Positions 1-36,300 of a stretch of DNA of 64,000 nt are shown here, piece by piece (positions within the stretch are counted from its first letter, which is position 1; every line of letters begins with the position of its first letter). Under the pieces are notes generated by a model. It was not told the origin of the DNA, made no database searches, and saw nothing but the letters and a program-made list of their open reading frames with translations. Both the position numbers and the translations under genes were made by a program. The stretch spans positions 18,662,001 to 18,726,000 of the forward strand of contig CP075492.1 in NCBI GenBank assembly GCA_021613535.1, in the 5' to 3' direction. Source of the DNA: Adineta vaga. Its lineage: Eukaryota; Animalia; Rotifera.

Positions 1-2266
1 CTAACCACCGATAGTTTTCTAAATTGTATCAGATAGAAGATATCAGATATTTACTTTCAATGTAAAATTTGAAAATTCTAATTTAAATTCAATACAAATC
101 AATGTCTAACCACCGATAGTTTTCTAAATTGTATCAGATAGCAGATATCAGATATTTACTTTCAATGTAAAATTTGAAAATTCTAATTTAAATTCAATAC
201 AAATCAATGTCTAACCACCGATAGTTTTCTAAACTGTATCAGATAGAAGATATCAGATATTTACTTTCAATGTAAAATTTGAAAATTCTAATTCAAATTC
301 AATACAAATCAATGTCTAACCACCGATAGTTTTCTAAACTGTATCAGATAGAAGATATCAGATATTTACTTTCAATGTAAAATTTGAAAATTCTAATTTA
401 AATTCAATACAAATCAATGTCTAACCACCGATAGTTTTCTAAACTGTATCAGATAGAAGATATCAGATATTTACTTTCAATGTAAAATTTGAAAATTCTA
501 ATTCAAATTCAATACAAATCAATGTCTAACCACCGATAGTTTTCTAAACTGTATCAGATAGAAGATATCAGATATTTACTTTCAATGTAAAATTTGAAAA
601 TTCTAATTTAAATTCAATACAAATCAATGTCTAACCACCGATAGTTTTCTAAACTGTATCAGATAGAAGATATCAGATATTTACTTTCAATGTAAAATTT
701 GAAAATTCTAATTCAAATTCAATACAAATCAATGTATAACCACCGATAGTTTTCTAAATTGTATCAGATAGAAGATATCAGATATTTACTTTCAATGTAA
801 AATTTGAAAATTCTAATTTAAATTCAATACAAATCAATGTCTAACCACCGATAGTTTTCTAAACTGTATCAGATAGAAGATATCAGATATTTACTTTCAA
901 TGTAAAATTTGAAAATTCTAATTCAAATTCAATACAAATCAATGTCTAACCACCGATAGTTTTCTAAACTGTATCAGATAGAAGATATCAGATATTTACT
1001 TTCAATGTAAAATTTGAAAATTCTAATTCAAATTCAATACAAATCAATGTATAACCACCGATAGTTTTCTAAACTGTATCAGATAGCAGATATCAGATAT
1101 TTACTTTCAATGTAAAATTTGAAAATTCTAATTCAAATTCAATACAAATCAATGTCTAACCACCGATAGTTTTCTAAACTGTATCAGATAGAAGATATCA
1201 GATATTTACTTTCAATGTAAAATTTGAAAATTCTAATATAAATTCAATACAAATCAATGTCTAACCACCGATAGTTTTCTAAACTGTATCAGATAGAAGA
1301 TATCAGATATTTACTTTCAATGTAAAATTTGAAAATTCTAATTTAAATTCAATACAAATCAATGTCTAACCACCGATAGTTTTCTAAACTGTATCAGATA
1401 GAAGATATCAGATATTTACTTTCAATGTAAAATTTGAAAATTCTAATTTAAATTCAATACAAATCAATGTCTAACCACCGATAGTTTTCTAAATTGTATC
1501 AGATAGAAGATATCAGATATTTACTTTCAATGTAAAATTTGAAAATTCTAATTCAAATTCAATACAAATCAATGTATAACCACCGATAGTTTTCTAAATT
1601 GTATCAGATAGCAGATATCAGATATTTACTTTCAATGTAAAATTTGAAAATTCTAATTTAAATTCAATACAAATCAATGTCTAACCACCGATAGTTTTCT
1701 AAACTGTATCAGATAGAAGATATCAGATATTTACTTTCAATGTAAAATTTGAAAATTCTAATTTAAATTCAATACAAATCAATGTCTAACCACCGATAGT
1801 TTTCTAAACTGTATCAGATAGAAGATATCAGATATTTACTTTCAATGTAAAATTTGAAAATTCTAATTCAAATTCAATACAAATCAATGTCTAACCACCG
1901 ATAGTTTTCTAAACTGTATCAGATAGAAGATATCAGATATTTACTTTCAATGTAAAATTTGAAAATTCTAATTCAAATTCAATACAAATCAATGTATAAC
2001 CACCGATAGTTTTCTAAATTGTATCAGATAGCAGATATCAGATATTTACTTTCAATGTAAAATTTGAAAATTCTAATTCAAATTCAATACAAATCAATGT
2101 CTAACCACCGATAGTTTTCTAAATTGTATCAGATAGAAGATATCAGATATTTACTTTCAATGTAAAATTTGAAAATTCTAATTCAAATTCAATACAAATC
2201 AATGTATAACCACCGATAGTTTTCTAAATTTTATCAGATAGCAGATATCAGATTTTTACTTTCAAT
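1..2266. repeat. 105-bp tandem array, ~21.5 copies, runs off the left window edge; probable left subterminal array of the KDZ element
   Basis: Unit ctaaccaccgatagttttctaaa(c/t)tgtatcagatag(a/c)agatatcagatatttactttcaatgtaaaatttgaaaattctaatt(t/c)aaattcaatacaaatcaatgt recurs at 1, 106, 211 ... 2206. There are no unique spacers. Confidence 0.97.
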
Positions 2267-2544
2267 ATCAAAATGGAAAACGCATATCGAAGAATGAGGT
2301 GAGTTTAATTGTCTCCGTTCAAAAAAGAAGTGCGAAGATGAGTATGAAGCGGACTTCTAATATGCATACATATACAGTATATATAGATAGAAATATATAG
2401 AACGAGGAATTAGTGTGGAAAGAGATGTTTGGAATACATATTTGTTATTGAATAATTTGTTGTTTTGAGTTATTTTAATAGGTAATATGAAGAATAGTTG
2501 TTCACAAGATAGTGGGCATTGTAACTTAAAAGATGGAAAGAAAA

Positions 2545-2780
2545 GAAGAAATTCTAACGCGTGTTTACGAACTGATCGAGGACAATTAATACTGAAGAAA
2601 GTAAGATAGAAAGAAAGAATCGGATATATGTATATCAGTTGATCGAGGGCAGTCGAAAGGAAAGAGGACGAGAAATGATCTAACACATGTATATCAGCTG
2701 ATCGAGGACAATTAGTGCTGAAGAATGTAGAAAAGAAAGAATGTAACATATGTATGACAGCTGATCGAGGGCAACGAAGT
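2545..2780. repeat. Degenerate repeat with four ctgatcgagg(a/g)ca motifs (two ~125-bp units)
   Basis: (c/t)tgatcgagg(g/a)ca near 2572, 2639, 2698 and 2761; ggacaatta..ctgaagaa.gta occurs twice. Confidence 0.7.
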
Positions 2781-3122
2781 AACGAACTGTTTAATCATCA
2801 TCAGATATCTTCCGTTGTATTCTGTATTCAGATGGTATTATACATTGTTAACTGTTTGATACTTGTGCTATATTTGTTTTCAGTACTATATAAGAAGATA
2901 CTGTTGAATTCGCATTCAGTATAAAACCTTTCAAGTAAATTTTTTTTTTATTAGATGGATTAGAAAACGCGCGTCTTATATGTCAGTTAAGTAATGAAAT
3001 CGAATTATCTTGATTTTGACGATTTGAATGAAAATCAAAAGTTTATCAAGTAATACAGTTTGAAATAAAATGATGTTTCTTGTTTATAGATATCAATAAT
3101 TGTTCAAATTTAATATTTATAA

Positions 3123-6100
3123 ATGTCGAAGCGTTCAGCTATTATTGATGATAAAACCATATCCGAAATGATGTTGAAGAAGATAACGGAAGCATCAGCA
3201 ATGAATGTTGACATGTCTAAAATTGTAAATTCGGAGCGAATGCAATTGTTAACAACCTACAAGGATATGTATAACTTTGATCCTTCCTTAACTTTTTTTC
3301 TATCACTAGCAATCATGTCGCATTTTGCTCAAAGCTCATATTACACGCACTATTCGAGCTCCGATCATTGTATCGTTCAATTATACTTTTGGCTCCTAGG
3401 ATCTAGTGGTATGTTCAAAATATTCGTTAAATATTTTGTTTTTCCTGTCACGACATCTTTCATGCGAATTTTTTTCTTTTGAGACTGCGTCAAATCTGTA
3501 AATATGTTGGTGTGAATATTTAGATATTTCAATGTTCGAAATTAGTTGTGTGGTAGTAATACTACAACAGTTTTTATGAAATTGAAGAGCCCGATATGTA
3601 TGAATTATTTGAATAAAAAGATCGCGAATGTAGAAATATTGTGTGTCATATAGAATAGATTAGTTAGAGAAAAATAATTAAAGATTAAATAGTGCAATAA
3701 AATCAATGAAAGCAATCGAGAAAGAGAGGCAGATGAAAGAAAGGAAAGAAAAAAAAGTATATATGTCTCTCCTATGGTTCTCTGTACGACATCTATCGAA
3801 AAAAAAGATATATGTGAATCTGTCTATAACATACACACAAATGTTATTACTTATTTAATGTATCTTTCATATTAAACTGTCGCAGCAATAAGTCGAATTC
3901 ATATTGAACAAAAATAATCTGGAAAGTAAAGAATGAATAAGATTAATGAATTAATAATTTATACATTACTGTAAAATCTCTTGAGAGCTTTGGTGTATGA
4001 AATTAATTATTGATTGCTTTATTTCATGTATCGACATTAGTTTACGAAAAGGAAATAAGTTATTTTGCTTTGTAATATCACGTCATTTTTATAAATAGAA
4101 GATTCTTATATGTCGAGTATTGATTTTTATAGTTGAGTACATCTTACAAAGATCTTTTAATGTTGTTTTTGGATTTCTCCTATTTCTTTTAATTATGATT
4201 TCTTTTGTGATATTCAAGGAAGTGGTAAAACACATGCATTCAAACAACTTGAAAAAGCTATCTCAAAAACTGAGAAAATGTTCTCAGCAACATATATGAA
4301 ACCGATTATGGTTAATGGTAGTCCAACTGAATCATCTGTATCATCGATTGTTACTCATACCAATCATATTGGTTTAAGACAACATCTATCTTCTAATAGT
4401 AAGATATTGTTAAACGATGATGCGGATGTAATTGCTGAGTCATATGGATTGTATAACGTAAATGATTTTACAAAAGAGCACGAACGAAATATCATACTTT
4501 GTGGATATGACGGGTAAAAAACAATGTTTAATATAGAGATATGTTGATTATATATCATCGTTATTAGCTTTGGTAAGTCATTCAGAACTACAGGAACAAC
4601 ACTTATACAAATCGAAGACAAGCGTTTGACAATTGCAATTGCTACTACTGGTGGTAAACTCTATAAAAACATGAAAAACTGGATCAATTTTACTGGTTTT
4701 GATGGTTCTCATAACAGATTTTTGTACATGAGTATTCCTAAATTAGGTTATCCAAGGCCTCAAGAGTAAATCTTATTAAGTGACTTTAGACTCATCGTTT
4801 TAGCTTTGTTATTTATAGTTTTCAGATCCGCATGAATTCAAAACACAATCCAACCTTTGCTCATCTAGCTGTGATCACTCATCTATTTGGTACTGTGCGA
4901 TTTGTTTTTGATATGTCACAAGCGGAACGTAGAAAATTTTGCAATGGTATTTAAATTAAGAAACTTTATGATAGATTCTTAGATTTTTTTTAATTTCCAT
5001 TTACTTACTTGCAGCTTCATTTGACGTATCATCAGGAGCACAGATTGAAGATGATCAAACACAACAAACTGGTTCTGCTATGTTCACATTATGGAATTTA
5101 ATTGCCGATTTTAACGAAATGCAAGATCAAATTCCAAATAAACAACGGCAAATTACTGATTTTTACGAAAAAATAAGGACAACTTTTCCAAGATTAGCAT
5201 GTTTAATGCAGCTATACATGAATGCTATGGTGATACTTGAACGTGTTAAAGATTTTGTTATATTTGCTGAAGGAGATCATCAAGATTTGATCATTAGCGA
5301 AGATTTTATAAAGAACGTCGATATGATAATAAAAACTGATTATCATAAATACGATAAAACATATTTACCACGTACCGAAATTCATCAAGAAGTAATGAAT
5401 CCCATGATAATTGTTCAAAAAGAAACCGTATTATCTGCATGGGGTTGGTATGAACACCATCTAAATGTGATTAAAAAATTATTTACAATTGATCATAATT
5501 TCCAAAATAAATCAACTGATATACCACCATCAATTTCACCCAAACAACAAACATTAAAACAGCTAATCATGTATTTGGATTTTAATATTTTTACATTATC
5601 GTCAATAAGTGTGAAACACCCTATCACGGAAAAAACGTATGTAAATGGATTTTTTATTGAAGCAAATGAATAATTTATAACTTATTTCTTGTATAGAGGA
5701 ATAATCAAGAATAGACCAGCTTTAGGTGAGAGAGCACTTCAAGAATTAATGAATGATAATTTACTCAAATTCAATTATTTTTTAACTGATATTCGTGGGC
5801 GTAATGTTAAATCATACATTAAAGTACCGGTGCCATATGAGGATGATCCAACACGAGATGTTTTTATTGCAAACTTATTGAAACATGGCATAGATTTTGA
5901 CGAGTATTGTTCCATTTATAAAACATCTTCACTTCCACCATATAATAATTTTTCAAGTTTAACGTTAGAAATCTTTGAACATAGTGCATGTTTTGTTAAT
6001 GAATATTCAAAGTATCGTGATCAATTAAATCATGTAATTCAAAAACATATCGAAAATTGCGTCATTCGTGAAGTTGTAGAAGGAAATTTTGTTATTCAGA

Positions 6101-7451
6101 ATGCAAATGAATTTACTCGTCAATATGAGGATATTGAGAATTTAGTCTTAAGCAATCAATCAAATCAAGCAAATAGCAAACGTCAATCTTTTAATATAAT
6201 AAATCAAACAAATAAATCAACAACACAATGTAGACATACAACAGTATCCATAGTCAATGTTTCTCGTGATGTTGTTGAAAAAAGTCAACAGGCACAGCAT
6301 CATAGTCCAAAAAGAACATCTTGTGATCAACAGAATGCTATTATAATAGGTAATTATTTCTTCGATTTCCAAATCTCTACATTTACTGATCGCTCTAAAT
6401 AGAAAATTTCACTACTGATGCAGATGGTTTATTAGATGACCCTGATAATTCGCTAATGTCATTATCTGAAAAATCAGGTGACGGTAAAGATGAATCTTCA
6501 AACATATCAACACAGAAAACCATGACAGATAGTATGTTGTTTATTTTGATTCTTTAATGAATTTTCTTTTTCTTAACAGTTACAAATAAAGGTGAACACG
6601 TAAGCGAACAAGCAATCAAAAAAGTCATGCAAAGCATAATGACTGGAAAATCAGTGATTTATACTAAGACAGACCTGAGCATGATATGTAATAAACCGAA
6701 TATCCGACTAACAGCAGTAGATCGTTTGATTGACGCTAAGCTACTTAAATATGAAAGTAATCTATGGATCGAACCGACTCGTGCAAAAAAACCTAAAAAA
6801 GATTTAAAACCTATATTTCGTCCAGGATGGTTAAAGTATGAATTACTTCATATAGTTGTTGTCATTTGTTCTTGGCTTTCGTTTGTAGAATGTGTCCATC
6901 TTCAAATTCAAATGCATCAATATTTGATTTTATACAAACTCTGCAAAAACATGTAAGTAGTCATGTTTCACTGGTTTAAAGTATCTCTAATAAAAAATGA
7001 TTTGATTTTTTTCCAGGTAAATCTTAGTTATGATGATTTTTTAAAATCATTTTATCCTCATTTAAAAGAGAATGTTTTTACACACAATAACTGGAGATTA
7101 TCAGATGAAGTAATCAAAATATTTCAATCAAATATATTTTACAAAGAACACGTTCGATATGACATCGCACGTTTTGGACCAAATGATATAATAAATAATG
7201 AGTTGGATGTAGCAAATCAATTAGCAACATCAACAGCGCCAGCATCACATTTGAACAATTTGCAAGAAGCAACAACAAACGAAAATATAATAGAGATATC
7301 TCAACAACGAATGAGTCATGATAGTGGTGAGGAAGAGGATATTACGTTTACTTGTCCATTGTCAACAAGTGTCAAAAGAAAACTTGGATCTCATACAAAT
7401 TTTCCAGAAAATCCAAGACGCGTGCAACCAAGTAGAGTGAAAAAAAATTAA
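3123..7451 (+). CDS. Multi-exon P-loop ATPase/helicase-like protein (DUF3987-like) with two probable C-terminal winged-helix-like repeats
   Basis: Splicing 3408^4219 gives LLGSSGSGKT (Walker A). Also ILLNDDAD (Walker B-like), LCGYDG^FGKSFRTTG, RLTIAIATT and GFDGSHNRFLY. Introns 3409-4218 and 4514-4567, and introns ending at 4818 and 5014, keep the frame. Later ORFs 5080, 5689, 6627 and 6963 are separated by short GT-AG gaps. Confidence 0.75.
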
Positions 7452-7699
7452 ATACTTCGATAGTATCTCTTTTACCAACAATATTTTATTATATCGACAA
7501 TTTAATGATTGATTTTATTCTCCTTGAACATATTTATAGTTATTAAATCTTTCCATTCGATTGTTCTTTTAATAATCATACTTTTAACTCATTTTAGATT
7601 ACTAATATAAAAGAAAGGAATAATTACGTTGTTTAATCAATATTTTAAACGTACATCTCTCCTATTATTTTCGATTATTTATTTTTATTTGCCAATTGA

Positions 7700-10277
7700 A
7701 TGAGTCAAAATAACCATTTTTTAACTTCAATGAGATCAGTAGAAATTACTGATGAAGAACATGGTTTTATTTTAATGATGCGAACCATGCGCTTGGATCA
7801 AATTATATGTGTTATGATGCTGAATAATTTTTTACCAAAAGAGTTACCTAACAAATTCGATCATATTGTCAATATAATTAATTTAAATTTTAACAAGTCT
7901 TATGAAATTCATACAATAAAAACGCTGATTGAATTCATTTCTATGCATCCGGTATATAATCAATTATTTCAACAACATTCATTAGATGAAATGATACAAA
8001 AATATCAAACAAATAATGTTGCTGGATCTGATGGTGTAAATGAACTATACTTAAAACCTTATACAATCGAGTGCATTCAATGTAAGAAACAGCTGAAACC
8101 AACATTTTCTCATCGTTCAAAGACTGTGATGTCGCTTGTAAGAACCTTCAAAGCACGTATGTAATTTTACCAGATATTTTGGTAATCGATTTATCTTGAT
8201 TCTCTCTAATAGTCATCAGCACTTGCGTTTGTCAAGATTGCAATATTCAAATATTTCCTAATTTTTACATTCATAACAACAAGAAGATTTTCACAGTTGA
8301 GTCGATTAAAAATGATCAATACATTTATTTAAATGGAAATCAAATCTTCGAACAAAACTTACTGATTGATTTTGATCATCAATTAGTTCAGAATACCGTA
8401 TCATTTGAAGGATATACTAATGCGTATAATTTAAAAATCAAAATGATTTTTGAAAGACAAAATCAATCATCATCTGTTATGCAAAGTACTAGTTATAACA
8501 TGTAAGACAATTTTAACTTAGAACATGACTAATATTTACTTACCTTTTACTTCTTAGCACCTATCTTAATGAAAGAAATTTTCAAATGGCTTGGTTATTG
8601 ATTAATGTCGTTAAATTTTTTTTTATGACTACTAATGAAAAATCTATTACTATACCAATGTCTGCACGTGACGTTGATGAATGTAATGATTTTTTTTTAA
8701 TGATTAAATCCGATCTTTATGAAAAATTTGTTAACTTTTGGACGAGACATCAAAGGTTCACAAGGACATGTGATCCAGCAACATGCTCCAGGGTATTCAT
8801 TGTGGATGGTCATCAAAAAGCTAATCGACTTATTTGTCAGCACAAAAACGTATTTGATAATACTATACCTGAACTTGGATCAGTGCAAGTGGGATGTCTA
8901 TATACTCCTCTGAGAAAAGGTATGCTTTTCATTTATTCGAATTACTAGAGTTCTATTATGAACGAATGCACATTTTCGTGGCAACTTTTAGAAATTAGTT
9001 AACGGGAAAAATCATCTTTATAAAGAATTGAGAGAAACAATAAATTTTTAGTAGATTTGGTTAAGTTCAGACGTAAACAGTTGGATATAATAGGTAATAA
9101 AGGAAGTATGCTGATGACTTTTTTATCCATTTCATTTTGTATCTCATGTACATCGAATGTAGTATTTGTTTTATAATACATCTTACACTCTCTTATCATA
9201 TAACGACAGAAAACGTAAGTATTACTTACTCTTATGCATAACTTTCGTTTTTTATCATTTCACTTACCGATCATTATTCTGTTTTTCCTTTTCCTTTATG
9301 ACCTTATTTTTTATATTTACGAAACAGATTTTCGAGATTTTTATATCGCTATAGAACATCATCATAAATCATGCTAAACGTTGTCATTTTTTTCGTACTA
9401 TTATGGTGGAAAGGACGAGGATATAGATATACTATCAATTTAACAATAGACTGTTTGGTTTTCCATCTTGATTGATGATTCTTCTTCTAATTTCATGTTC
9501 TTTGTATAGCTTCTAATGTTGACCACAGGTTCTGTCAACACCATCAACCACCAAGAGCATCATCAAGTGCAATTTATCAATTGATTGATGGGAATAAAGA
9601 AATAGATCTTGACAGATCAGCATTGATTCAGTATATTGACAAAGATGGCAGTTTTAACGATGAGTTGTGTAATGTGTTCAGATCTGGTATTAATAACATA
9701 TCAAAGATAAGTTCATATGGTTTTTTAGCTACTTTCTTGAATTGTTCGGTTATTGTTGGATTCACTGAACAACCATGTTCTGAAGGAAGTGAGTGTAAAG
9801 ACTTTATCTGGATTTGTTTAACAGTAACATCACTGTGTTTTAAAAATAATAGTGAGGCGTGTCCTTCATCATTTATTAACCATAAAGCGGTTCGGTCCAT
9901 TACCTGCAGCAATGTGTTATGATTGTGCATGTACTCTGAAACTCTTTGTTGAAAAACACTTTGGCTCAGAGAATTTGAAATCGACGAATTTTACTGCATT
10001 TCTTCCATCGCTAAGTATGGCAATCGATCGATTTCACGTGAAAAACCATAAAAGAGCTATGTGCAAAACAATAATGAGACCTGATCATGAGTGTCACAAT
10101 GGTATATACAATGCTATTAATACGCAAGTTGCTGAACAAGGTTTTGCTTACTTATCTAAGTTCAAAAATTCGTTCAGAGGATACAATTATCCGAAGTCAA
10201 CGATATTTTTTACAATTCTTTTTCATCTTAAAAATTGTACAATAACTGGTATCAGTCCGTTTGAACAATCAGTATAA
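7700..10277 (+). CDS. KDZ (Kyakuja-Dileera-Zisupton) family transposase with N-terminal CxC zinc-binding region, multi-exon
   Basis: CIQC...CVCQDC..FPNFY; FIVDGHQK..RLIC; RFCQHH; GFLATFLNCSVIVGFTEQPCSEG^MRR (intron 9789-9852); CYDCAC; IDRFHVKNH; NTQVAEQGFAYL. This is the D..D..H..E motif order of KDZ transposases. Confidence 0.85.
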
Positions 10278-10479
10278 AAACTTGATAGGTTTACACGTGT
10301 TTTTTTAAAAGTTTGACCATTATGATTCTTTTCTTTCGTTTGATTCATACCATTTCTAGTGAGCTTTAGTTTCGCTCTAAAAATGCTAAATAAAAAACAC
10401 TCGTGAATATTCTTTTCACGATTTTTCCGTATTATCCAAATTTAATGAAAGGCATGAAAATAATCACAGATAGTTCATG

Positions 10480-11157
10480 TCTACTTACCTGGTGAGTTTA
10501 TTAAAGAATGACACTAAATATCTGATATCTGCTTATCTGGTGAGTTTATTAAAGAATGACACTAAATATCTGATATCTGCTTATCTGGTGAGTTTATTAA
10601 AGAATGACACTAAATATCTGATATCTGCTTATCTGGTGAGTTTATTAAAGAATGACACTAAATATCTGATATCTGCTTATCTGGTGAGTTTATTAAAGAA
10701 TGACACTAAATATCTGATATCTGCTTATCTGGTGAGTTTATTAAAGAATGACACTAAATATCTGATATCTGCTTATCTGGTGAGTTTATTAAAGAATGAC
10801 ACTAAATATCTGATATCTGCTTATCTGGTGAGTTTATTAAAGAATGACACTAAATATCTGATATCTGCTTATCTGGTGAGTTTATTAAAGAATGACACTA
10901 AATATCTGATATCTGCTTATCTGGTGAGTTTATTAAAGAATGACACTAAATATCTGATATCTGCTTATCTGGTGAGTTTATTAAAGAATGACACTAAATA
11001 TCTGATATCTGCTTATCTGGTGAGTTTATTAAAGAATGACACTAAATATCTGATATCTGCTTATCTGGTGAGTTTATTAAAGAATGACACTAAATATCTG
11101 ATATCTGCTTATCTGGTGAGTTTATTAAAGAATGACACTAAATATCTGCTTATCTGG
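10480..11157. repeat. 48-bp tandem array, ~14 copies; probable right subterminal array
   Basis: Unit tctgcttatctggtgagtttattaaagaatgacactaaatatctgata; internal copies are identical. Confidence 0.97.
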
Positions 11158-11256
11158 TCAGTATTAATATAATTGGTGAGATATCAATAACTCAGTTAAA
11201 ATTCATTTTCAATGTTCTTCCAAAAGACAACTAGGACGATCATACGAACGCAATAC

Positions 11257-12141
11257 TCATGCGATTTCTATTGAGCAAAATGTTGAAAATTTTAAACTTT
11301 CGTAATTTTTATATTTTGAAAATTTGTAAATGCGAGTTTTGAAAAGTGGTACCAATTTGATATTTGTCATTCCTTGGTATGTATAACAATCATACAAGAC
11401 GTCAGATGTTATACCGTACATTAAAAGCATAAAGGAAAATGTTAGAGGAAGAAAACATATGAGATAAAGCAATGAAATAGATAATATTTGAATTGTCATC
11501 TTTCGAATTTTTCGCCATTGAATTACTTGTCGAAGACGATATTTTTGTCGTACAACACGTAAGAATAAAGCGATACTAAATATAAGAATTATAAAAATAG
11601 GAATTATTTGATGAGCTATTCCATCGTACATAGCAAATGTATGTGAATCATATGCACATGCATTTAAACATATCAAGAAAATATTAATAGTATTTTCACA
11701 TGATGGAAAGAAGTATGCGATGGTGTAGAATAAAAAACAATAGAAAATAATCACGATAAAAGGGAGATAATGAATAAAGAAACGTTTCTTTCTTGTTGAT
11801 ATCCATCCTTCATGAAAAATAAGAATATGTCTTTCGATAGTTGTCCAAGCAAAGAGTATTGTATGTGTGATGTATATCATCCAATCAAAAAATGACCAGA
11901 TTTGACAAAATATCATAGATCTTTCCCATATACCATCATGATAATAAAAATAGATCATCAATGGATATAATGTCACGTCCATAATAACACTAATGATAAG
12001 AATAAAAATAATCACGTGATTATTAAGAGCATGACGAAGTGTTCGATCAAAAAGAAAATTATAAAGAACAAATAATAAACAGAGAAATGATGGAATTAAT
12101 AGAAGAAGTAATGACCAAAACCACATTGCATTAGATATCAT
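11257..12141 (-). pseudogene. Intronless rhodopsin-like orphan GPCR, truncated before TM7
   Basis: Six hydrophobic segments, LRHALNNH, C in TM3, WTTIERHILIFH, RKMTIQILSIS..LP. After LYDCYTY (~11378) the ORF turns hydrophilic and no TM7 follows. Confidence 0.8.
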
Positions 12142-13073: not shown

Positions 13074-15330
13074 TCATCGACTCGTCCCAAACACTACAAA
13101 TTCATTTTCAAAATTTTCCCGATTATTACTGCACAACAGTTCGCCTATTTTCAATAATGGAGCTGGTAAATTTTCGAGTTCTTTCGAATTTATTTTTGTT
13201 AAATCATATTGATTTGCTTGTTGGAAGTTTTCCAGTGCTTTTTGCGAATTATTCATAGACAGATATATCTGCGCAATCTTAAAATATAGAGTGGCAAGAC
13301 GGCTATCATCAGGATTTTGTAAAATAACTTCTAATTGTTTTTCGAAGTAATGCAACGAGAGTTCATAGTTTTCCAATTTGCCGTAAATTGTTCCTCTATT
13401 TTCGTAGGATTTTGTCAGTTCATTTTTGTTAGATGAGTTATTTAGCAAATTCATAAATAGTTGTTTTTGGAGGTATTCTAAAGCCATTTCATAATCTTTA
13501 AATTGCTTTTCATATACAAGGCCAATTGCTTCATATAATAATGGAAGTATACAGAGGTATTTATTACTGGTGATTGAATTTGAAAATCTACTGCTTGCTT
13601 ATAGTATGAAAGTTCGAGTAGAGTATAACCTAAGTGTCTGTAGACGGTACCAATTCTAAAGTAGATCATTACTATAAACAATTTATCATCTTCTCCAGAT
13701 AAATTATAATAATGATTCAAAGCCTTTTCAAAGCAATTTAATGCATAAGTATAAGCATTATTCATAAAATATATTCTACCCATAGTACCATAGATGAATA
13801 CTAGTATCTTATCATCTAATGGTAAAGATGCAAGTGCACATTTAAGAAGTTTTTCGTGCAGTTCTACAGAACATACTTAGATATTGAATTACTCGTTCAA
13901 ACATATTCGCTTCTAAAGACGTATATGTCATCAATTGATAGAGAACATACATCGATGGCATTTTCAATATTGTCCGAAGCTGATGATTCAACAACGTTGA
14001 GACTCCCAAAAACTGTGCCAATATTATTCAAAGTTAAACGCATATCAAGATGATTCGATGGTAATGACTTCTGTGAAAGTTCTAGTGATTTGTTAAGCAT
14101 AGTTAATGCAAGCTCTTTTTTATCTTGCAAAAGATATACATTATCCAAATTATTATAGATACCTGAAACGTCTGGATGATTTTCTGGCACATATGGTAAT
14201 AATATATAAAGTGCTTGCGTGTAATATTTTACTGACTTGTCAAAATCGAAATGTTCTTGATAAACTGATCCTAGATTATTGTATAGTGTTGATAGGTAAC
14301 GCTCGTTATCAGCTGTTTCAGAATCATGAAAGAGATCAAGTGCTTGTTTAAATCGACATCGAGCTGATTCAGTTTGTCCTGCATGAAGATCTATTAAGCC
14401 TATATTACTATATGTTCTGCCCAAAACATGGTTATTTGGTATAGAGAAATTCTCGTTCAGTACAATCACTTTGTCATAATATTGTCGAGCTGATTCATAA
14501 TCACCTTGCTTGTATTTTATAAGACCTAAATTATTGTAAACTAGATCAGTATGTTGATACTTGGAAGAGCATGCTTCGATAAATTTTCTTTTAAATGAAC
14601 AGCTTTCGTGTCCTGTGAATAGCACGTTAGGAGATAACGAAGGTGGTGTTGATTGTTTTAACAAGGCGAGAGAATATTTTTTTGCTCGGTCGAAGTCTCC
14701 CATATTCGTCAGATAGAATCTCAATGTGAGTAGTGTCGGTTCTTCATCTTGCATATAACTGAATTTTCTTATGCCAGCGAATGGTTTATTTGAAACTTTC
14801 ACACTTGCATGAATTTCAAAAAGTACAAATTCATTTTGTAGACGATCTTCACCATTACCAGCATAGATTAATGCAACTGCCCTATCAAAAGTCATTGATA
14901 AAAATGTATTCATTGTTATAAGACCGTCAGTATTTTCTGGAAGTTTTTCAAATTCTTCAATAGGCATAGTGAAATCACGATAGACAGTGAATGACGATTG
15001 TTTTCTTGTTTCTGCTTGATATAAGTTATTTAATTGTTGATGCAGATCACTGAAGAAAAGTCGAAATTGAAATATAGTATCGATATTTTCCGTTAGAAAT
15101 GCACGATTTAAAAGGCACTAGAGAAAGCAATCCCGTGTATACCAGAAAATGGCTTGATTCAGTTCATAATAATCTTCGAAATCTTTAATTTTTTCCAGTT
15201 CAACATCATTACCCGCGTATTGTGATGTACATGATTGAAGAAATTCCTCTTGAGAATAACTGTCATATAAAGTAGATATACGTTTTTTCGTGTTTGTTAA
15301 GATTTGACTTATCGTCGAAATTAGAGAGCT
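13074..15330 (-). pseudogene. ADP-ribosyltransferase (ART) + TPR protein, disrupted
   Basis: AIFWYTRDCFL* (premature stop 15118-15120), TVYR, NTFLSMT, LFEI, QDEE, then many TPRs (YNNLG, YSNIG) split across ORFs 13897, 13478 and 13074. Confidence 0.85.
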
Positions 15331-20784: not shown

Positions 20785-21969
20785 TTAGATATGAGTAATA
20801 AGAAGTCTATCTAGAAAAAGTCGAAGATGCTTCTCTTCTCTATGAACACATAGCACATTACTCCACCGTTTAATTTCAAAGACAGGCGACCAACAGTTTG
20901 TCAGACGTGCTAAACCTGTTTTACCAAGCATATAACAGATAAAACCTTCTTTACTTAAAAATTCGATGACTGTTAATAGACTAGTTGTTTTCCAAGTACC
21001 AACTCCATGATTTTCAAATATAAGCAATCTGATTTGCTTTTTTGAGAATAGTTTCTTTGCTCCTTGAAGAACAAGTGGATCCGCACCTTCCGTATCAATT
21101 TTGAGTAAATCTATTTTCTGTTGTATATTTTTTTGTTCAACAAAATCATCAAGTGTCATTGTCGGCGTTTGAAAAATGTTGTCGTTGCTCGCAGTGTCAT
21201 CTCTAGTCATCAATCCGCATGCTTCTCCTCCCGCAGGACATTTCTTCATATTAGCTGTACCCGTAGTATTACTAATCGCTAATCGATGAACATGTAACGT
21301 CGAGAGATTCATCCAAGCGCATGCTTGATCAAGTATTTGATAAGTGCTTTTCATCGGTTCGAACGCATGAATTTTGAGTATAGTATCCATAGGATTATTT
21401 ATCTGTACAGTATTCAGTATTGTTTCATTGCAATCTGAGCAAACGCCACAATCATTGATCTTTAAAACCTGAGAGAGATATCTATACAAGCTTTTCGGAT
21501 TAATATCCTTTTCTGGCATCCACATAGATAACCATGAAACGATAGTATAACCTTTGTTTGCGCCAATGTCAAAGAAAAGTTTATTTTGCTGCGGTGATTC
21601 GTGTAAGTCAGCCAGATACATCATTGAGAGGTAATCGTTTCCGTAACAACTAGACCACAAATTGTCTTTGGATAAGACTTCTTGAAATTTATTCGCTTGT
21701 GTTAATATACTTGTTAAAGAACAGATCATTTCGTTGGAATAATTACTTTGCGACATTGTCTGCGACAAAGCAACAAGCTGCCATAGTTTGGATAAATGAT
21801 TTGAAAAGAGTTTATTTATAATGATAACATTTAATGTAACGAATGTTATCGATATAACAGATAGCATAAGAATAAAAAATGTGTGTCGACGGGTTATTCG
21901 CGTATACATAACTCGTAGTGACAAGATAAATATCTTAAACAATAAAAGTTGAAAAGAAGAACAGTTCAC
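20785..21969 (-). CDS. FkbM-family SAM-dependent methyltransferase with N-terminal membrane anchor
   Basis: FFDIGANKG, IHAFEP, TLDDF, IDLLKIDTEG, LIFE; intronless. The real start is probably the downstream Met (MYTRITRR). Confidence 0.9.
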   Translation of the reverse strand: MNCSSFQLLLFKIFILSLRVMYTRITRRHTFFILMLSVISITFVTLNVIIINKLFSNHLSKLWQLVALSQTMSQSNYSNEMICSLTSILTQANKFQEVLSKDNLWSSCYGNDYLSMMYLADLHESPQQNKLFFDIGANKGYTIVSWLSMWMPEKDINPKSLYRYLSQVLKINDCGVCSDCNETILNTVQINNPMDTILKIHAFEPMKSTYQILDQACAWMNLSTLHVHRLAISNTTGTANMKKCPAGGEACGLMTRDDTASNDNIFQTPTMTLDDFVEQKNIQQKIDLLKIDTEGADPLVLQGAKKLFSKKQIRLLIFENHGVGTWKTTSLLTVIEFLSKEGFICYMLGKTGLARLTNCWSPVFEIKRWSNVLCVHREEKHLRLFLDRLLITHI

Positions 21970-28415: not shown

Positions 28416-31400
28416 ATGACAAGCGAAAAAGTTCAAAATTTATTCAAGATCATTGATGATTCAATTGCAGCTGATAATTCATTCGAGAAAATCAATTCAT
28501 TATTTGGTGAAGTTTTTGTTTTATTAAATAAACTCGAAGTTGAAGATGAATCATTATATAATGCAGCTAAACATGAACATCATACAAAAAAATCTTCTTG
28601 TTTAAAATCATTTGGAAAAATAGAAGAATCTTTAGAAGAAGAAACATTAGCTATTCGATATGGATCGAAATTACCAAGAGCAATTCAACAAGAACCAATA
28701 AATCCTTTGCTATTACCATTACCAATGGAAGATAATGATGATGAATTAACGATTTCAAAAGCGAAAGCATTTATTGAAAAAAGTTTTCGAGATTTGGCAC
28801 AACACAGATTAATTTCAAATCAGATAAAAAATGAATTAGAAAATTTACTTATTGATTATCTTCTTCCAAATGAAATTCTATCATTTGAACAATATGATAA
28901 TTTAGAAAAATCATCTTCACAAATACATCTTATTGCAAAAACGTTTCAAGATCAAATTACTCTTGATAATAATCTAGAACAAATTGTAACAAACAATGAA
29001 ATTAATTCTGAAGATCCAATAACAGAAATTTCATTCCTTCTCACATTATTTGATACATCAATTGATAAAGGTTTAAATGCATATCGAAGAAATTTTTTTC
29101 AATTTCTTCTAATGAACAAAGGAAACTTGCGTGAAATTTTATTTTCAAATATTCCATTAACAAAAGAACGTATCAATTCTCATGCAAGAAAATTATCGAA
29201 AATCTTTCATCCAGATAAAGCATTAGATGAAAATGATAAAAATGACTTTCGAGAAATATTTGAATGTATTATTAATTCAAAAGAAAATTTATTAAATGAA
29301 TTAACACAAAATGGAACCATTTGCGATCGAGATTTAATTAAAAGATATACAAAAGAAGGACAAAAATTATGGGAAATTGCTCGAGATTATAGTCGAGCAA
29401 GAAATGCAAATTGGAATCAATTTGTTCATTTAAATGAAAATGAATTAAGAAATCGAACAGAAACTGAATTAAAGAAATTTCAAAAGATACATTCATTATT
29501 AGCTTATGAACAATATCGTGCAGCAGCATTAACACTTGGAATAGGAGGTACTGCAGAAGAACGTAGTGAATTAAGACGAATGATGGCGATTACACTTTAT
29601 ACAGGTGAAGAATATTTACAAGCACAAATGTATACAATTGCTGCAATGCATATTCTATTGAATGATACGAATACAAATGAAATTTATTCAAAAATAAACG
29701 GTTTACAAAAATTATTAGGAAAAATTCAAAGTACTCAACGTCAACCTACAACAACAACGACAACAACACCGTTATCGTCTTCAACTCAGCTTGTTTCTGT
29801 TAATAATCAACAGCCATCATCTTCACTTATATTAAAAGCTCAAATGCAAAACGAATTACGATCTATTGTACTTCAACAATGTTTAGTTCGAGGTGAAGAA
29901 AAACAACTTGAAACATCAAAAGAATTAATCTTAGCTGCGAAAACAAAAGTTACTCAATATAATTCTTTAACATTTGGAATGTTAACCACAACTGCTGGTG
30001 CTGCAGTTGCAACAGGTGCACAAGTATATCAGACAATATCAACAGGTTTATTATTAGGTTCAACAATTGGACCAGTTGGAATGGTTCTTGGAGTTACTGG
30101 AGGATTAATTATTATTGCTGGTGGTGCATTATTAACAAAGAAATCTTTTGATATTACTAATAAACTTGGTGATGAACCAATTATACGTGATATACTTAAT
30201 GAAAGATTATCAGAAGCAATGGATTATTGTAAACAACAAATGTATACGAAATTCTTAGAATCATTAGCTAGACCATATTGGAATGAGTCTTATCTAATCA
30301 GAATAGAAATTCATGGTGATTCTGTTGAAATTAAAATTGATTCTCAACATATTATAAAACAATTATTAAAACATGAATTTCGTCCAGATGGTATTGCTTA
30401 TTTATTAATATTACTTGGTGAAGCATTACTTAATAAACCAAAATTAAATGATAAAAATATAAATCTACGACAACCAACACAATCAACATTTAATGAATTA
30501 GCATCAAGTTTATTTCGAGATGTTTTCAAGAAAAATGATAAATTACAAGAAAAAGCGAAACAATTAGATTCACAAGTTCAAAAAAAACATCTAGATAATT
30601 TAACATTAAATAAATTTCAATATTATTGGCGTTCAATGATATCATCAAAATATTCATCGTATGTTTATTCAATACCCGAAGAATATTTTAAAGATGCATT
30701 AAAAACTCCATTTACAACTCGATTAGATGAATTGGGTGATATCGCTCGTTTAAATTATGCAATTACACAAATAATTATTGGTGGTGTCGATAATTTAGAT
30801 GAAAGTCAAGAAACAATTCTGGAAATCAAACGTAAACAAATTTCTACAGAGAATAATCAATTTTTCAAAGTATCACAATTAACAATGCAAGCTATTGATG
30901 ATTTAGTTATGGCATTTGGTCTTCAACCAAAATCTTTAATTGATAATGATTTATTAGTTTTAGAGAATAAAGTTTTATTTGAAAATATCAATATTATGAT
31001 GAGTGGAAATGTTCCTATTAATTGTGAATCTGTTAAAAGTGTATCAAATGCATCAGAACAATTAGAAGCTTTTTGTGAATTATGTAATATGGAAATTATT
31101 TTAACTCAAAAAGAATTTACTGAAAAAGTTAAAGATTTATTTACCAATGAATCAATGAAAGATAAGATTCAACGTATGATGATAAATGATGGAATAGATA
31201 ATATTAACAATTGGATTAATGAACATTTCTGTAAACAACAATGGATTTTATCTGAAATACATTTACCAATTCTATCGCATATATTTAATGTAGAAATTCA
31301 TATTTGTTCTGTTGAAATTCATTCAAATTATGGACGAGTATTTGTTGAACATAGTAATCATACATTTGATTCATCGAGTATTTTTGTTGTATTGAATGAT

Positions 31401-32929
31401 GAAAAGAATATAATTTGTTTATTCAAAATATGTGAATTAAAATTAAATTATTTACTTGATCAATTACATTTAGTTCAAGATATTCAATCAAAAATTCGTT
31501 TATATCATCAAATAGCTTTATATTATCGTTTAAAAGCTGAATATTATGAAACGATACATCGATTAAAAGCTTTACCAATGTGGAATAGTGCTAAAGAATA
31601 TTACTTAAATATCATTCAATTAGATAAAAATGATTTAAAAGCATCACTTGGTTATGGACGTTCTCTTATTATGCTTAGTAAATGGAAAAAAGCAACAGAA
31701 TTCTTACATGAAATCCTTCAATTGCATGAAGATTCGAATGAAGGATGGTATTTATTAGGTTTAGCATATCGAAAATTACGAATCTATGATAAAGCAGAAT
31801 ATGAAATTCGAAAATCACTTTCGAAATCATCAGATTATAAAGATGCTATCAATGAATTGCGAATAATTGAAACTTTACAAACCGAAAAAGTTGATGATCG
31901 TCTGAAAGTTTATGATCGTATGACAACGAGTGATACTCGCCGGAATGAAAACTCTTCAAATTTTAATATTTTATCGATTGATGGAGGTGGCATTCGAGGT
32001 TTAATGCCAGCTGTATGGTTAGCTGAAATTGAACGTCGTACAAATCGTTCAGCCGCATCGATGTTTCATATGATGGCTGGAACATCAACAGGTGCGATTA
32101 TTGCAGCTGGTCTATCTACTCCAAATCTTGATGATGTTTTCAAAGCTCGTTATCGAGCTGCTGATATTGTTGAACTTTATGTTAATCATTCAAATGAAGT
32201 TTTCAAAAAGCCATCAGGAAGATTTTATAATATGCGACGTTATTTATCACAAGAAGCAAAATATATTGATGATGGTCGAAAAACTTATTTGGAAAATATT
32301 TTGATCATACACTTTTATCACAAGTATTAACTGAATTAGTTATTCCAACTGTGAAAAATGATAAGCAAATAACACATTTATTTAATCGTTATGATTGTCG
32401 TCATAATCATGCACGTGATTATGAATTACAAGATATTCTTATGTGTACAACAGCAGCACCAACTTATTTTTCATCATATCAATTAGATAATTGTCAATAT
32501 ATTGATGGTGGCGTTCAAATAAATAATCCAGTTATGGCTGTATATGATGAAGCAATACGATATGGTAAATCAAAAGAAGATATTTTTATTTTATCACTTG
32601 GTACAGGTGATTATGTACCAAACCCGTTACATCCAAATGCGAATCGACATTTATTATTCTATGCAATGAATGTTCAACAAGTTTTGAATATTATTTGTGA
32701 CGGACCACAATATAATATGGATGTTCATATGTTATCGGTTTTAAATAAAGAAAAATATCAACGCTGGCAATTATGGTTCGAAGAACCAATTGAATTAGAT
32801 GCGTATAAAGAGCCATTTATTGAAATCTTATTTGATAAAGCACGAGCATTTTTTGAAGAAATGGAAGGTTATGATAATGATAAACGTTTAGGACTTTTGC
32901 TCGATCGATTAAAAGATGATGCACATTAA
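28416..32929 (+). CDS. Large J-domain / hydrophobic Gly-rich segment / TPR / patatin phospholipase protein with a single frameshift at ~32280
   Basis: RKLSKIFHPDK; Gly-rich hydrophobic stretch; TPRs (GWYLLGLAY); ILSIDGGGIRG, AGTSTG, TAAPTYF, IDGG, LSLGTG. Adding one A in the run at 32279-32283 joins the two ORFs. Confidence 0.85.
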
Positions 32930-33343: not shown

Positions 33344-36300
33344 AAAAAAATCACAAGAAAGTAGAAGACAAGAAGCAGTATTAAAAAATATTTCTCAAAC
33401 TATAAATTTCCATGAACAATTATTAAAAAAAAGCATTATATCTATGATTGGTCTAGTCGTTATACTCTTAATTATTAATCATTCTGCAGGTAAAAAGAAA
33501 AATTGATCATTTTGTTTCTACTTAATCATATGATAGTCTTAATAAAAATACGCATTTGCCATTATACGAAAGAAGCTTTCAGAACTTAAAGGCACTCCTC
33601 CTCACAAATAATTTCCTAGTTTTTAATATTGCTTTGCTATAATTTTAAGGACTGAGTGACCTTAGTGAGATATGTGTTTCTGGTAAAAGTTTCAACAACT
33701 AAATTTCATCAGCCGAATGTGGGTGAAGATATTGTCCCTATGCATCCTCACCGACATTCTCGATTATGTCAAAAATGATTAGAAAACTGTCTTCTTTTGT
33801 AAAGGTGTGTCTTACAATCAGCCCAAATTTAGTTTATGTGCATTGTGGGACTCAAATGCAACTACATTTGCTGATGGCGATACAATTGGACAACAACCAT
33901 CGGGTATTTTTATCAACATACAAAACAATATTTATGTAACCGATAGAGAACATGGTCGTATTCTCATATGGGATAATGAAACATCGACTCCAACTAAAAT
34001 TATTAGTGAAGATTTGATCAAACCATGGAGTCTCTTTGTCACGACACAAGATGATATTTTTGTTGATAATGGTAATTTTAACAATCGAATCGACAAATGG
34101 ACAGTGAATACAACGACTCATAAATTCGTCATGAATGTTAATGGTTCTTGTACAGGATTATTTGTTGATATCAATAATAATCTTTATTGTTCGTTGGTAA
34201 ATCATCATCGCGTTGTTAGATTTACACTCGACAACCATCTTGCTCTACCAATGATTGTCGCAGGTACTGGTTGTCCTGGCCCAATAGCTAACATGCTCGA
34301 TCATCCACATGGCATCTTTGTCGACATTGGTTTCAACTTATACGTAGCAGATTCATATAACAATCGAATTCAACAACTTATGCCAAATCAAATGAATGCA
34401 ATCACTGTAGTTGGCTTTGGAGCAGCCGTGTATTTCATACTTAATAGACCGACATGTATTATAGTCGGTGTTGATGGTGATCTTTTTATTGTAGATAGTC
34501 ACAACCATCGAATCGTTCGATCGACAATACATGGAGTTCAGTGTTTAGTTGGATGCTCAGGTAAAAGTGGAGCCATGTCAAGTCAATTGCACAATCCACA
34601 AACAATGGCTTTTGACAGTAATGGTAATATATTTGTCACCGATGTGAACAATCACAGAATTCAAAAATTTATTCTCACTATTAACTCATGCGGTATGTCT
34701 GTTTCCTTTCGATTGGAAGATGAATATAGCGATTGTTTTTTTACGAAAGTATACAGAAGTGTACTATTAAGAGTATCGATGGATATGCTAGTACAGATAT
34801 TAAATGAGTGAAATTTCAACACTCACCTAATTTTCGAAAATAGATAACGATAGAAATATTTAATTTGCCAATCATATCAAGATTATTACTTCAATTATGT
34901 GTTTAGCTGGATAAAAGTTTTAGAAAAACTGAGAAAAAAAAATGATTATTATCATCAAACGTACATTAAAATTTTCACTTCAAGACGGAGTTAGATAGTT
35001 TTTAGTTACTTTTTTCAACTTATATCAAAAACATTTCCTGATCAAACTGAACTGAATTAGATGAAAGAAAAAGACGTACGAAATAATCTATTGATAAGTA
35101 CAACAATTGAAAAAGAATAAAAGTTCAGTGGGTAAACACCAAAATAAAATGCATAATTGCTCATTTGCCCTCTCCCTAATTACGCCACTGATCAGCAGTT
35201 GTTCTACGCTTATATATATTCGATCAAAAAATATTATATGTGTTAGTGCATAGACATTTTTTTCTATGCGCATTGAAATGCGTTAAAAAAGGCTAGTGTT
35301 ACAAAATCTTGCGTGTTTGTGTGATTATGAATTCGTCTATTGCGATCTCACTCGATACTATTATACTTAACATAGAACTATATGTGATTGTCAAAAAATA
35401 TGCTGAATTGAAATATCAATAGAAACAAATCACACGTTTATAAATACTCTCGTGATATTTTCTATATAATTCTAGAAACTACTACGTCGACGAAAACGAC
35501 TACTAGCACTACGACAATTACTGCTACGACGACGAAAATGACTACAAAATTTACAACGACACTATGTGAGAAGCAATCTTTTTACATTTCTGAATTGCTT
35601 TCATTCATTATAGTTTTACATGCATAATAGTGTTATAAAATTTCTAGATTAATTGAGTATAGCAATTAAGAATAACGAATAACTAGTTTGCTTAAATCCA
35701 AGAAAAATTATTCCAGATTTATGTGACAGAACTAAGCACTTATCACTTGATCTTCTATATTTTTGGGATTTCTAATATATAGAATAGTATTTGTTTGTGT
35801 ATATAGCGTGTTATTTCGGTAAAGATTATGTTAATCTCGTCGAAGGTGGACGACGTCATATTAGTCAATTAAAAGTCGGAGATCGAGTCTGGACATTAAG
35901 TCATGATGGCGAACATATAATCGAAGATGAAATCATGTTCATAGGACATGCTGTACCTAATACTCCGAGTTTGTATTATTCTCTATTCTGATTAGTTTTC
36001 TAAATAAATTATTTTAATTTAGCTTATTTTTATACATTCACCACAATTGAAGGACATACAATTAGTTTAACAGATGCAGATTATATAGTCGTTGCTACTA
36101 ATGATAAAATAAACATGGAAATTATTCATGCTTCAAAAGTAACACTTAACCATAAATTAATAATGGCTGGGCGTCGAATTAGTCTTGAAAAATAGTCTTT
36201 TCCATACGTATTGGTTATTATTCTCCAATAACACTTAGTGGATATTTACCTGTAAATAATATCTCAACATCAGTTTATAGTGATATGTAATTATAAAACA

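Follow-up and report, generated by a model that had tools for sequence, protein, structure and literature searches.

The subject of this analysis is a mobile element that begins just upstream of, and extends into, a 64,000-nt stretch of the genome of the bdelloid rotifer Adineta vaga (GenBank assembly GCA_021613535.1, contig CP075492.1, here C3, positions 18662001-18726000; this whole stretch is called the window below, and coordinates given without a contig name count from its first base). The element carries two genes on one strand, the upstream one (gene 1) coding for a protein of the DUF3987 family and the downstream one (gene 2) for a KDZ-type transposase, and it has terminal inverted repeats (TIRs), 8-bp target site duplications (TSDs) and near-identical copies at unrelated sites. 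Probably it is an autonomous cut-and-paste transposon of the KDZ/Zisupton group, in which gene 2 provides the transposase and a co-inherited DUF3987-type helicase is needed by the element and may act at its ends. An earlier note on this DNA had inferred an element with two genes and a length above 11 kb, which the TIRs, TSDs and copies bear out, and had put it forward as a candidate new transposon type, which it is not: the element is a variant within the known KDZ/Zisupton superfamily.

Ends, copies and insertion sites of the element

The A. vaga genome (100.8 Mb in six contigs, approximately 30% G+C) contains six copies of the family (A-F), of which copy A, the one in the window, serves as the reference. 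The termini were set by comparing copies A and B with C, D and E, which are more distant. Copy A is 12,987 bp long and extends from C3:18660390, which is 1,610 bp before the window, to position 11376. The earlier note had given the extent as 1-11377; the window does hold most of the element, but the true start lies upstream of it and position 11377 already belongs to the TSD. The TIRs are 29 bp long and imperfect, with 22 of the 29 positions matching. That is, the left end of the element begins GAGG(T/A)C..CAAATCTCAAATTG, and the right end is its imperfect inverse. In copy A the left TIR (GAGGTCATGACAAATCTCAAATTGG..., plus strand) starts at C3:18660390, and the right TIR (11348-11376, minus strand) ends ...GTCATTCCTTG, its final base being the last of the element. 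The 8-bp TSD of copy A, GTATGTAT, abuts the element on the left at C3:18660382-18660389 and on the right at 11377-11384. Perfect 8-bp TSDs also flank copies B (GAGGTTAT), C (TGAAAGAG) and D (TGACGACG), as well as a copy from a metagenome assembly (L045), and the TSDs of these five insertions have no obvious target sequence in common. No TSD was found around copy E or copy L044, both of which are full-length with intact termini, and this suggests recombination between copies or rearrangement of the flanks.

Copy B is found some 150 kb from copy A, in minus-strand orientation, and is 99.84% identical to it over 9.5 kb, with a different copy number in the arrays; the similarity ends sharply on both sides and the flanks are unrelated. 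The 8.2-kb bodies of the two copies differ at five positions. Both genes of copy B are frameshifted, gene 1 by a 1-nt indel in exon 5 and gene 2 by another in exon 3, which marks A as intact and B as a defective twin of very recent origin. When copy A and one TSD are removed in silico, a continuous minus-strand reading frame of 335 codons is restored, whose N-terminal part is a rhodopsin-family seven-transmembrane receptor. This N-terminal part of the host gene, which lies outside the element, occupies 11385-12141 on the minus strand, as seen from the domain match and the empty-site reconstruction, and the last 40 codons of the open reading frame (ORF) listed at 11257-12141 come from the transposon end. 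Copy B likewise sits inside an ORF that is restored upon its removal.

Inside the TIRs, the two genes are flanked by tandem arrays. The left subterminal array (plus strand) fills positions 1-2280 with 21.7 copies of a 105-bp unit and continues upstream of the window, and the right one (10480-11156, minus strand) consists of 14.1 copies of a 48-bp unit. As the earlier note had observed, the arrays are related and inverted relative to each other: the 14-mer ATATCAGATATTTA is common to both and occurs once per unit, with 22 plus-strand sites in the left array and 13 minus-strand sites in the right one, giving a total of 35 matches vs 0.25 in shuffled sequence. Inspection of ORFs and comparison between copies revealed no conserved ORF between the arrays besides genes 1 and 2.

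A search of the genome with the left-TIR pattern gave 15 matches, compared with none for a reversed control. Ten of the 15 are located away from any gene pair (C1:413361, C1:1031373, C1:12807898, C2:433347, C3:670420, C3:1544050, C3:16842802, C3:19840621, C5:10537413 and C6:948840), and four of these ten have the variant GAGGGCATGGCAAATC in common. The pair-less sites may be non-autonomous or deleted relatives that are mobilised in trans.

The transposase gene and its DUF3987-family partner

Gene 2 starts at 7700, on the same strand as gene 1 and downstream of the gene 1 stop at 7451, so that the gap between them is 248 bp, in line with the roughly 250 bp of the earlier note. All exon junctions of the two genes can be accounted for by frame-consistent GT-AG introns, most of which measure 53-68 bp. 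All features of gene 2 are on the plus strand. Exon 1 (7700-8156; the NCBI model starts at 7730) is followed by exon 2 (8213-8501), which contains the CxC5 zinc-cluster domain, and by exon 3 (8558-8919) with the motif VDGHQK; a 590-bp GT..AG intron (8920-9509), which is only about 70 bp in a metagenome relative, separates these from exons 4 and 5 (9510-9788 and 9853-10277, with the stop at 10275-10277), which encode the C-terminal, KDZ catalytic part with YDCAC, DRFHVKNH and NTQVAEQ. The same exon borders, including those of the 8920-9509 intron, are found in the NCBI model I4U23_016773 (P0093). CxC5 (PF18718) is matched by the segment 8200-8502 at 31.2 bits and by P0093 at 34.4 bits, the cut-off being 26.9. 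A homologous transposase encoded in the same genome by an uninterrupted 620-aa ORF of another lineage (lineage H, see below) scores 39.6 bits for KDZ, is also above the cut-off for CxC5, and matches a gene 2 exon of the window with an E-value of 2.8e-9. The Atlas neighbours of gene 2 are CxC5/KDZ (PF18758) clusters of rotifers and basidiomycetes. The KDZ type that the earlier note had read from the motifs is supported through these homologues, and the CxC5 match, the KDZ homology and the 8-bp TSD together place the element in the KDZ/Zisupton superfamily.

Gene 1, also on the plus strand, is preceded by a region (2281-3122) that is presumed to comprise the promoter and 5′ untranslated region and that has degenerate short repeats at about 2540-2790 and no conserved ORF. 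Exon 1 (3123-3408) ends with ...LLGSSG, the first half of a Walker A motif. Intron 1 (3409-4218; 810 bp, phase 1) has GT at 3409-3410 and AG at 4217-4218, and exon 2 (4219-4513) supplies SGKT, the rest of Walker A, followed by the Walker B sequence ILLNDDAD and then CGYDG. Exon 3 (4568-4765) encodes TTGG and DGSHNRFL, an MCM-like 'SRF' motif that resembles an arginine finger, and exons 4 and 5 (4819-4946 and 5015-5636, with the intron 4947-5014 between them) encode the C-terminal part of the DUF3987 domain. The remaining, C-terminal region (5697-7451, stop at 7449-7451) comprises at least three exons, the exact placement of the introns near 6200-6580 and 6820-6960 being ambiguous; its approximately 550 aa are conserved and match no Pfam family. 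All motifs that the earlier note had quoted for the two genes are present. The gene 1 protein would measure about 1,000-1,100 aa, and its N-terminal 450 aa are predicted to be a DUF3987-type AAA+ helicase module, in which the ATPase motifs are intact.

The exons of the window were searched singly, and spliced public models from relatives were used in place of the joined gene 1 product. Models from the same lineage exceed the cut-off of 27 bits for DUF3987 (PF13148), with 54.9 bits for P0066 (E-value 1e-14), 48.7 for P0067 and 44.4 for P0062, and an uninterrupted paralogous ORF (L034:4661-5908) scores 92.2 bits. It is because these homologues, rather than the exons of the window, pass the cut-off that gene 1 is assigned to the DUF3987 family, as the earlier note had anticipated. 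Spliced relatives also match PHROG 2373, annotated 'DNA helicase'. A profile of exon 2 made from three subfamilies matched 17 proteins among 1.84 billion, and those with a name all belong to Rotaria or Didymodactylos, both bdelloid genera. The Atlas places gene 1 next to DUF3987 clusters from rotifers and tailed phages, many of which carry fused primase domains. Copies A, C and D, Rotaria, Didymodactylos and lineage G have GSSG|SGKT and ILLNDDAD unchanged or with conservative substitutions, and the Walker A, Walker B and DG..(N/S)RF motifs, the last of which we take to resemble the MCM arginine-finger motif, are kept across all lineages compared. Helicase activity and an oligomeric ring would be expected of the gene 1 protein from its family, in which they have been demonstrated solely for the bacterial AgaPH (PMC11724360). 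The gene 1 exons and the spliced relatives had no DEAD or Helicase_C match, and the Pfam, NCBIfam and PHROG matches of the relatives included no family of the IstB, MuB or TnsC type. No primase, PriCT, Toprim or polymerase family was found in the gene 1 exons, the spliced relatives or the rest of the element, where weak domains could escape detection. A sequence search against solved structures gave no meaningful match, and a word-based search that started from the 886-aa Didymodactylos model found no cluster other than that of the model itself.

As the earlier note had pointed out, Walker A becomes visible only when position 3408 is joined to 4219, by a phase 1 GT-AG splice giving GSSG|SGKT. 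The same junction, splitting Walker A, is kept in every relative examined, with introns of approximately 190 bp in subfamily C, 95 bp in subfamily D, 50 bp in Didymodactylos, 930 and 1,290 bp in Rotaria and 225 bp in the two metagenome copies, and the Pfam matches of the public models of relatives run across its equivalent. The comparative support for this predicted splice is good. In run X1, labelled as another organism and presumed to be RNA, three contigs of 150-180 nt are identical to gene 1 (5285-5466, 6167-6317 and 6455-6605); one of them lies inside a presumed intron, and carried-over DNA or unspliced RNA could be their source. The long introns (810 bp in gene 1 and 590 bp in gene 2) were examined as candidate nested repeats; their extra sequence is confined to copies A and B and has no other match in the genome.

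Co-inheritance of the pair and the proposed role of gene 1

Both genes are kept in all six genomic copies, including the 5′-truncated copy F, and in each of them the KDZ exon lies 4.3-4.8 kb downstream of the gene 1 exon on the same strand. The pair also co-occurs elsewhere, a point that the earlier note had proposed to test. On a Didymodactylos contig, every exon of the two genes is present in the original order, at 28-54% identity, the gene order is likewise kept on a Rotaria contig, and a metagenome assembly contains two 10-kb copies, 99.4-99.6% alike, in which the pair is complete and the left terminus is identical in type. Furthermore, searches of the genome with the DUF3987 model and with paralogous ORFs revealed DUF3987 partners next to much more divergent KDZ genes of the A. 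vaga genome, in at least four additional lineages. The two genes are arranged head to head in lineage G/H (at least five copies); they have the same order as in the window in lineage I/J (L038/L039 at C3:15.25 Mb and L040/L041 at C2:16.21 Mb), the ends of which are inverted pentanucleotide arrays; lineage K has inverted arrays of 8-bp units, and lineage L is present in three copies. Inverted arrays bound the pair again in three of these lineages. Locus I has inverted (TGGGT)44 and (CAACC)42 at its borders instead of long-unit arrays, and in locus J a 3.2-kb insertion with two ORFs separates the KDZ and DUF3987 genes. Overall, a DUF3987-like ORF was detected within 1-8 kb of at least 17 of the 33 genomic KDZ matches. 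Away from KDZ genes, the genome search found DUF3987 genes only as fragments. Both genes are under purifying selection: between subfamilies, with synonymous sites saturated, the proportions of nonsynonymous and synonymous differences (pN and pS) are 0.27 and 0.65-0.71 for gene 1, and 0.20 and 0.75 for gene 2.

KDZ-DUF3987 copies of different families cluster in the first 250 kb of C2, some of them as inverted pairs, at 40-46, 160-170, 188-193, 207-212 and 235-240 kb. The rest of the window contains ORFs with matches to TPR (13900-14967), an FkbM methyltransferase domain (20788-21969), TPR and patatin (28416-32327; 1,304 aa), NHL repeats (33807-34808), and ART and TPR (37947-39404), and the mix of ORFs over 13900-57665 is typical of variable chromosome-end regions.

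Given the family membership of gene 2 and the duplications at the insertion sites, the transposase would cut at the 29-bp TIRs and integrate the element with an 8-bp staggered cut. The steady co-inheritance of the two genes and the selection on them suggest that the element needs the helicase. The gene 1 protein may be an oligomeric DNA motor, driven by ATP and loaded onto the element ends, where the inverted array motif could be its landing platform and where it would open or remodel the DNA for synapsis, excision or gap filling. By analogy, it would be a second, end-acting protein, as TnpA is for the En/Spm transposase.

A number of observations weigh against this interpretation. About half of the genomic KDZ matches, at loci not inspected closely, have no detected partner. 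Trees of single exons of genes 1 and 2 are compatible with each other and poorly resolved. The KDZ model (PF18758) matches 9828-10274 with its C-terminal half only, at 19.8 bits (E-value 7e-4), below the cut-off of 26.6, and the gene 1 exons of the window score 12 bits for DUF3987, also below the cut-off. In the AlphaFold2 model of P0093, with a mean predicted local distance difference test score (pLDDT) of 68, the catalytic half is poorly modelled, and the Foldseek comparison that the earlier note had proposed, carried out with this model, gave no match in the PDB at E ≤ 0.001 (nothing below 0.2), so that the RNase H-like fold with its acidic triad is structurally unsupported. The AlphaFold2 model of the paralogous DUF3987 ORF is poor (pLDDT 45) and leaves the AAA+ fold without structural confirmation. 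Moreover, the four RNA-labelled runs contain almost none of the stretch and no contig joining 3408 to 4219.

The main rival explanation, which we nevertheless regard as unlikely, is a replicon-like role, in which gene 1 would encode an initiator helicase, the arrays would be iteron-like loading sites and host polymerases would copy the element after or during excision. The DUF3987 proteins of prokaryotic elements are replicative helicases (PMC4889955, PMC5862659, PMC11724360), in four independent lineages the genes lie between iterated arrays, and DNA binding could reside in the C-terminal half of gene 1, which is long and conserved. However, the primase or polymerase domain that prokaryotic DUF3987 helicases almost always have was not found here, neither in gene 1 nor beside it, which also leaves the replicative transposition considered in the earlier note with no direct support. 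In addition, the copy numbers are low (2-6 per family), the inversion of the array motif between the two ends is the usual sign of binding sites for a transposase or another end-binding protein, and a KDZ element has been reported to excise without replacement (PMC9977147). A related and rather improbable possibility is that features of a eukaryotic DDE transposon and of a phage-satellite-like replicon are combined in one hybrid element. A helicase captured from a mobile element of prokaryotes would then read the arrays as origins, the excised or nicked element being amplified before reintegration. If so, transposition would follow a replicative route that is not known from eukaryotic cut-and-paste transposons.

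Less probable again is a role along the lines suggested in the earlier note, that of a regulatory AAA+ ATPase which chooses targets or confers target immunity in the manner of MuB, TnsC or IstB. A P-loop/AAA+ gene does adjoin a DDE-type transposase gene here and is inherited with it, but the specific matches in Pfam, NCBIfam and PHROGs are all to DUF3987, a family of MCM-like replicative helicases, or to DNA helicases, and none to IstB, MuB or TnsC. Moreover, the five TSDs lack an obvious common target and two of the five insertions lie inside coding sequence.

We give still less credence to gene 1 being a passenger that takes no part in transposition and instead serves anti-silencing, DNA repair or some benefit to the host, travelling with the element like the TET/JBP genes of fungal KDZ elements. 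The partner has been kept in at least five deeply divergent lineages and in three bdelloid genera, it is under purifying selection and has a fixed position in most lineages, and the DUF3987 sequences found away from KDZ genes are fragments. This retention, selection and position fit an essential partner better than cargo, even though accessory genes are often present in KDZ elements (PMC12730594, PMC12477816) and gene 1 evolves somewhat faster than gene 2. Finally, that the pair is no transposon at all but host genes spread by segmental duplication in repeat-rich subtelomeric DNA is extremely improbable: although most copies are near chromosome ends and copies E and L044 have no TSD, the sharp borders of similarity, located exactly at the inverted repeats, the five perfect 8-bp TSDs and the host ORFs restored on removal of the element indicate real insertions, and copies are found on different chromosomes and with the same termini in another species.

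Related systems and implications for cut-and-paste transposition

The autonomous transposon with an end-acting helicase that we favour has points in common with several known systems. KDZ elements are described as large, with 8-bp TSDs (the length typical of Zisupton) and accessory genes such as TET/JBP in fungi (PMC12730594, PMC12477816), and excision of Zisupton has been observed directly in Chlamydomonas (PMC9977147). The rotifer element resembles them in its predicted KDZ catalytic domain following a CxC zinc cluster, its TIRs, its 8-bp TSDs, its size and the possession of an accessory gene. Unlike them, it has a DUF3987 helicase gene rather than TET/JBP as the accessory gene, constant across lineages, it has long inverted subterminal tandem arrays, and its host is a bdelloid rotifer. 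In the literature searched on KDZ, Zisupton, DUF3987 and bdelloids, with Repbase, Dfam and several key papers outside this scope, no description of a KDZ-DUF3987 pairing was found, in agreement with the novelty that the earlier note had supposed.

DUF3987 proteins are described as replicative helicases of superfamily 6, related to MCM and encoded by phages and mobile elements (PMC4889955, PMC5862659), and a bacterial member, AgaPH, as a proven 5′-3′ helicase dependent on Walker A and B (PMC11724360). Gene 1 shares with these proteins of phages, satellites and integrative elements the Pfam family (through its homologues), Walker A and B, the SRF-type motif and the location on a mobile element, whereas it is a eukaryotic, intron-bearing gene with no primase-polymerase partner or PriCT found, its product has a C-terminal extension of about 550 aa, and it is paired with a DDE-type transposase gene rather than with a replication module. 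AcademH and KolobokH are eukaryotic DDE transposons that also encode a helicase besides the transposase (PMC10799480), and are in this respect cut-and-paste lineages of a similar kind. Their helicases are of superfamily 2 (DEAD/Helicase_C) and their transposases of other superfamilies, while the rotifer helicase is AAA+ and MCM-like and its transposase CxC5/KDZ. In MuB, TnsC and IstB systems, too, the gene of an AAA+-type ATPase adjoins a DDE transposase gene, but these ATPases belong to different AAA+ clades, with no family match to gene 1, and the rotifer element has no evidence of target selection. In En/Spm (CACTA) elements, the transposase TnpD acts with a second protein, TnpA, and short subterminal motifs are inverted at both ends. 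The rotifer element may work in the same way, having a transposase, a second element-encoded protein and inverted subterminal motifs; nevertheless, the two systems are unrelated in sequence, TnpA is not an ATPase, and binding of the arrays by the gene 1 protein is only putative.

Eukaryotic cut-and-paste transposons are usually held to need their transposase alone. In the present case, a phage-type, MCM-like helicase has been retained under selection by an entire KDZ clade, across bdelloid genera and in several lineages so divergent that the helicases barely align. This retention suggests that the helicase is likely an obligatory second component of the element. The gene is probably one of prokaryotic mobile elements that has been taken over by a eukaryotic transposon, and bdelloids are known for horizontal gene uptake. 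The annotation of public rotifer genomes now labels the products of the pair 'hypothetical' or 'unnamed' proteins. With an intact 13-kb copy having defined ends, a frameshifted twin and possible non-autonomous relatives, the family provides a testable system in which the role of an AAA+ motor for a DDE transposase can be asked in a eukaryote.

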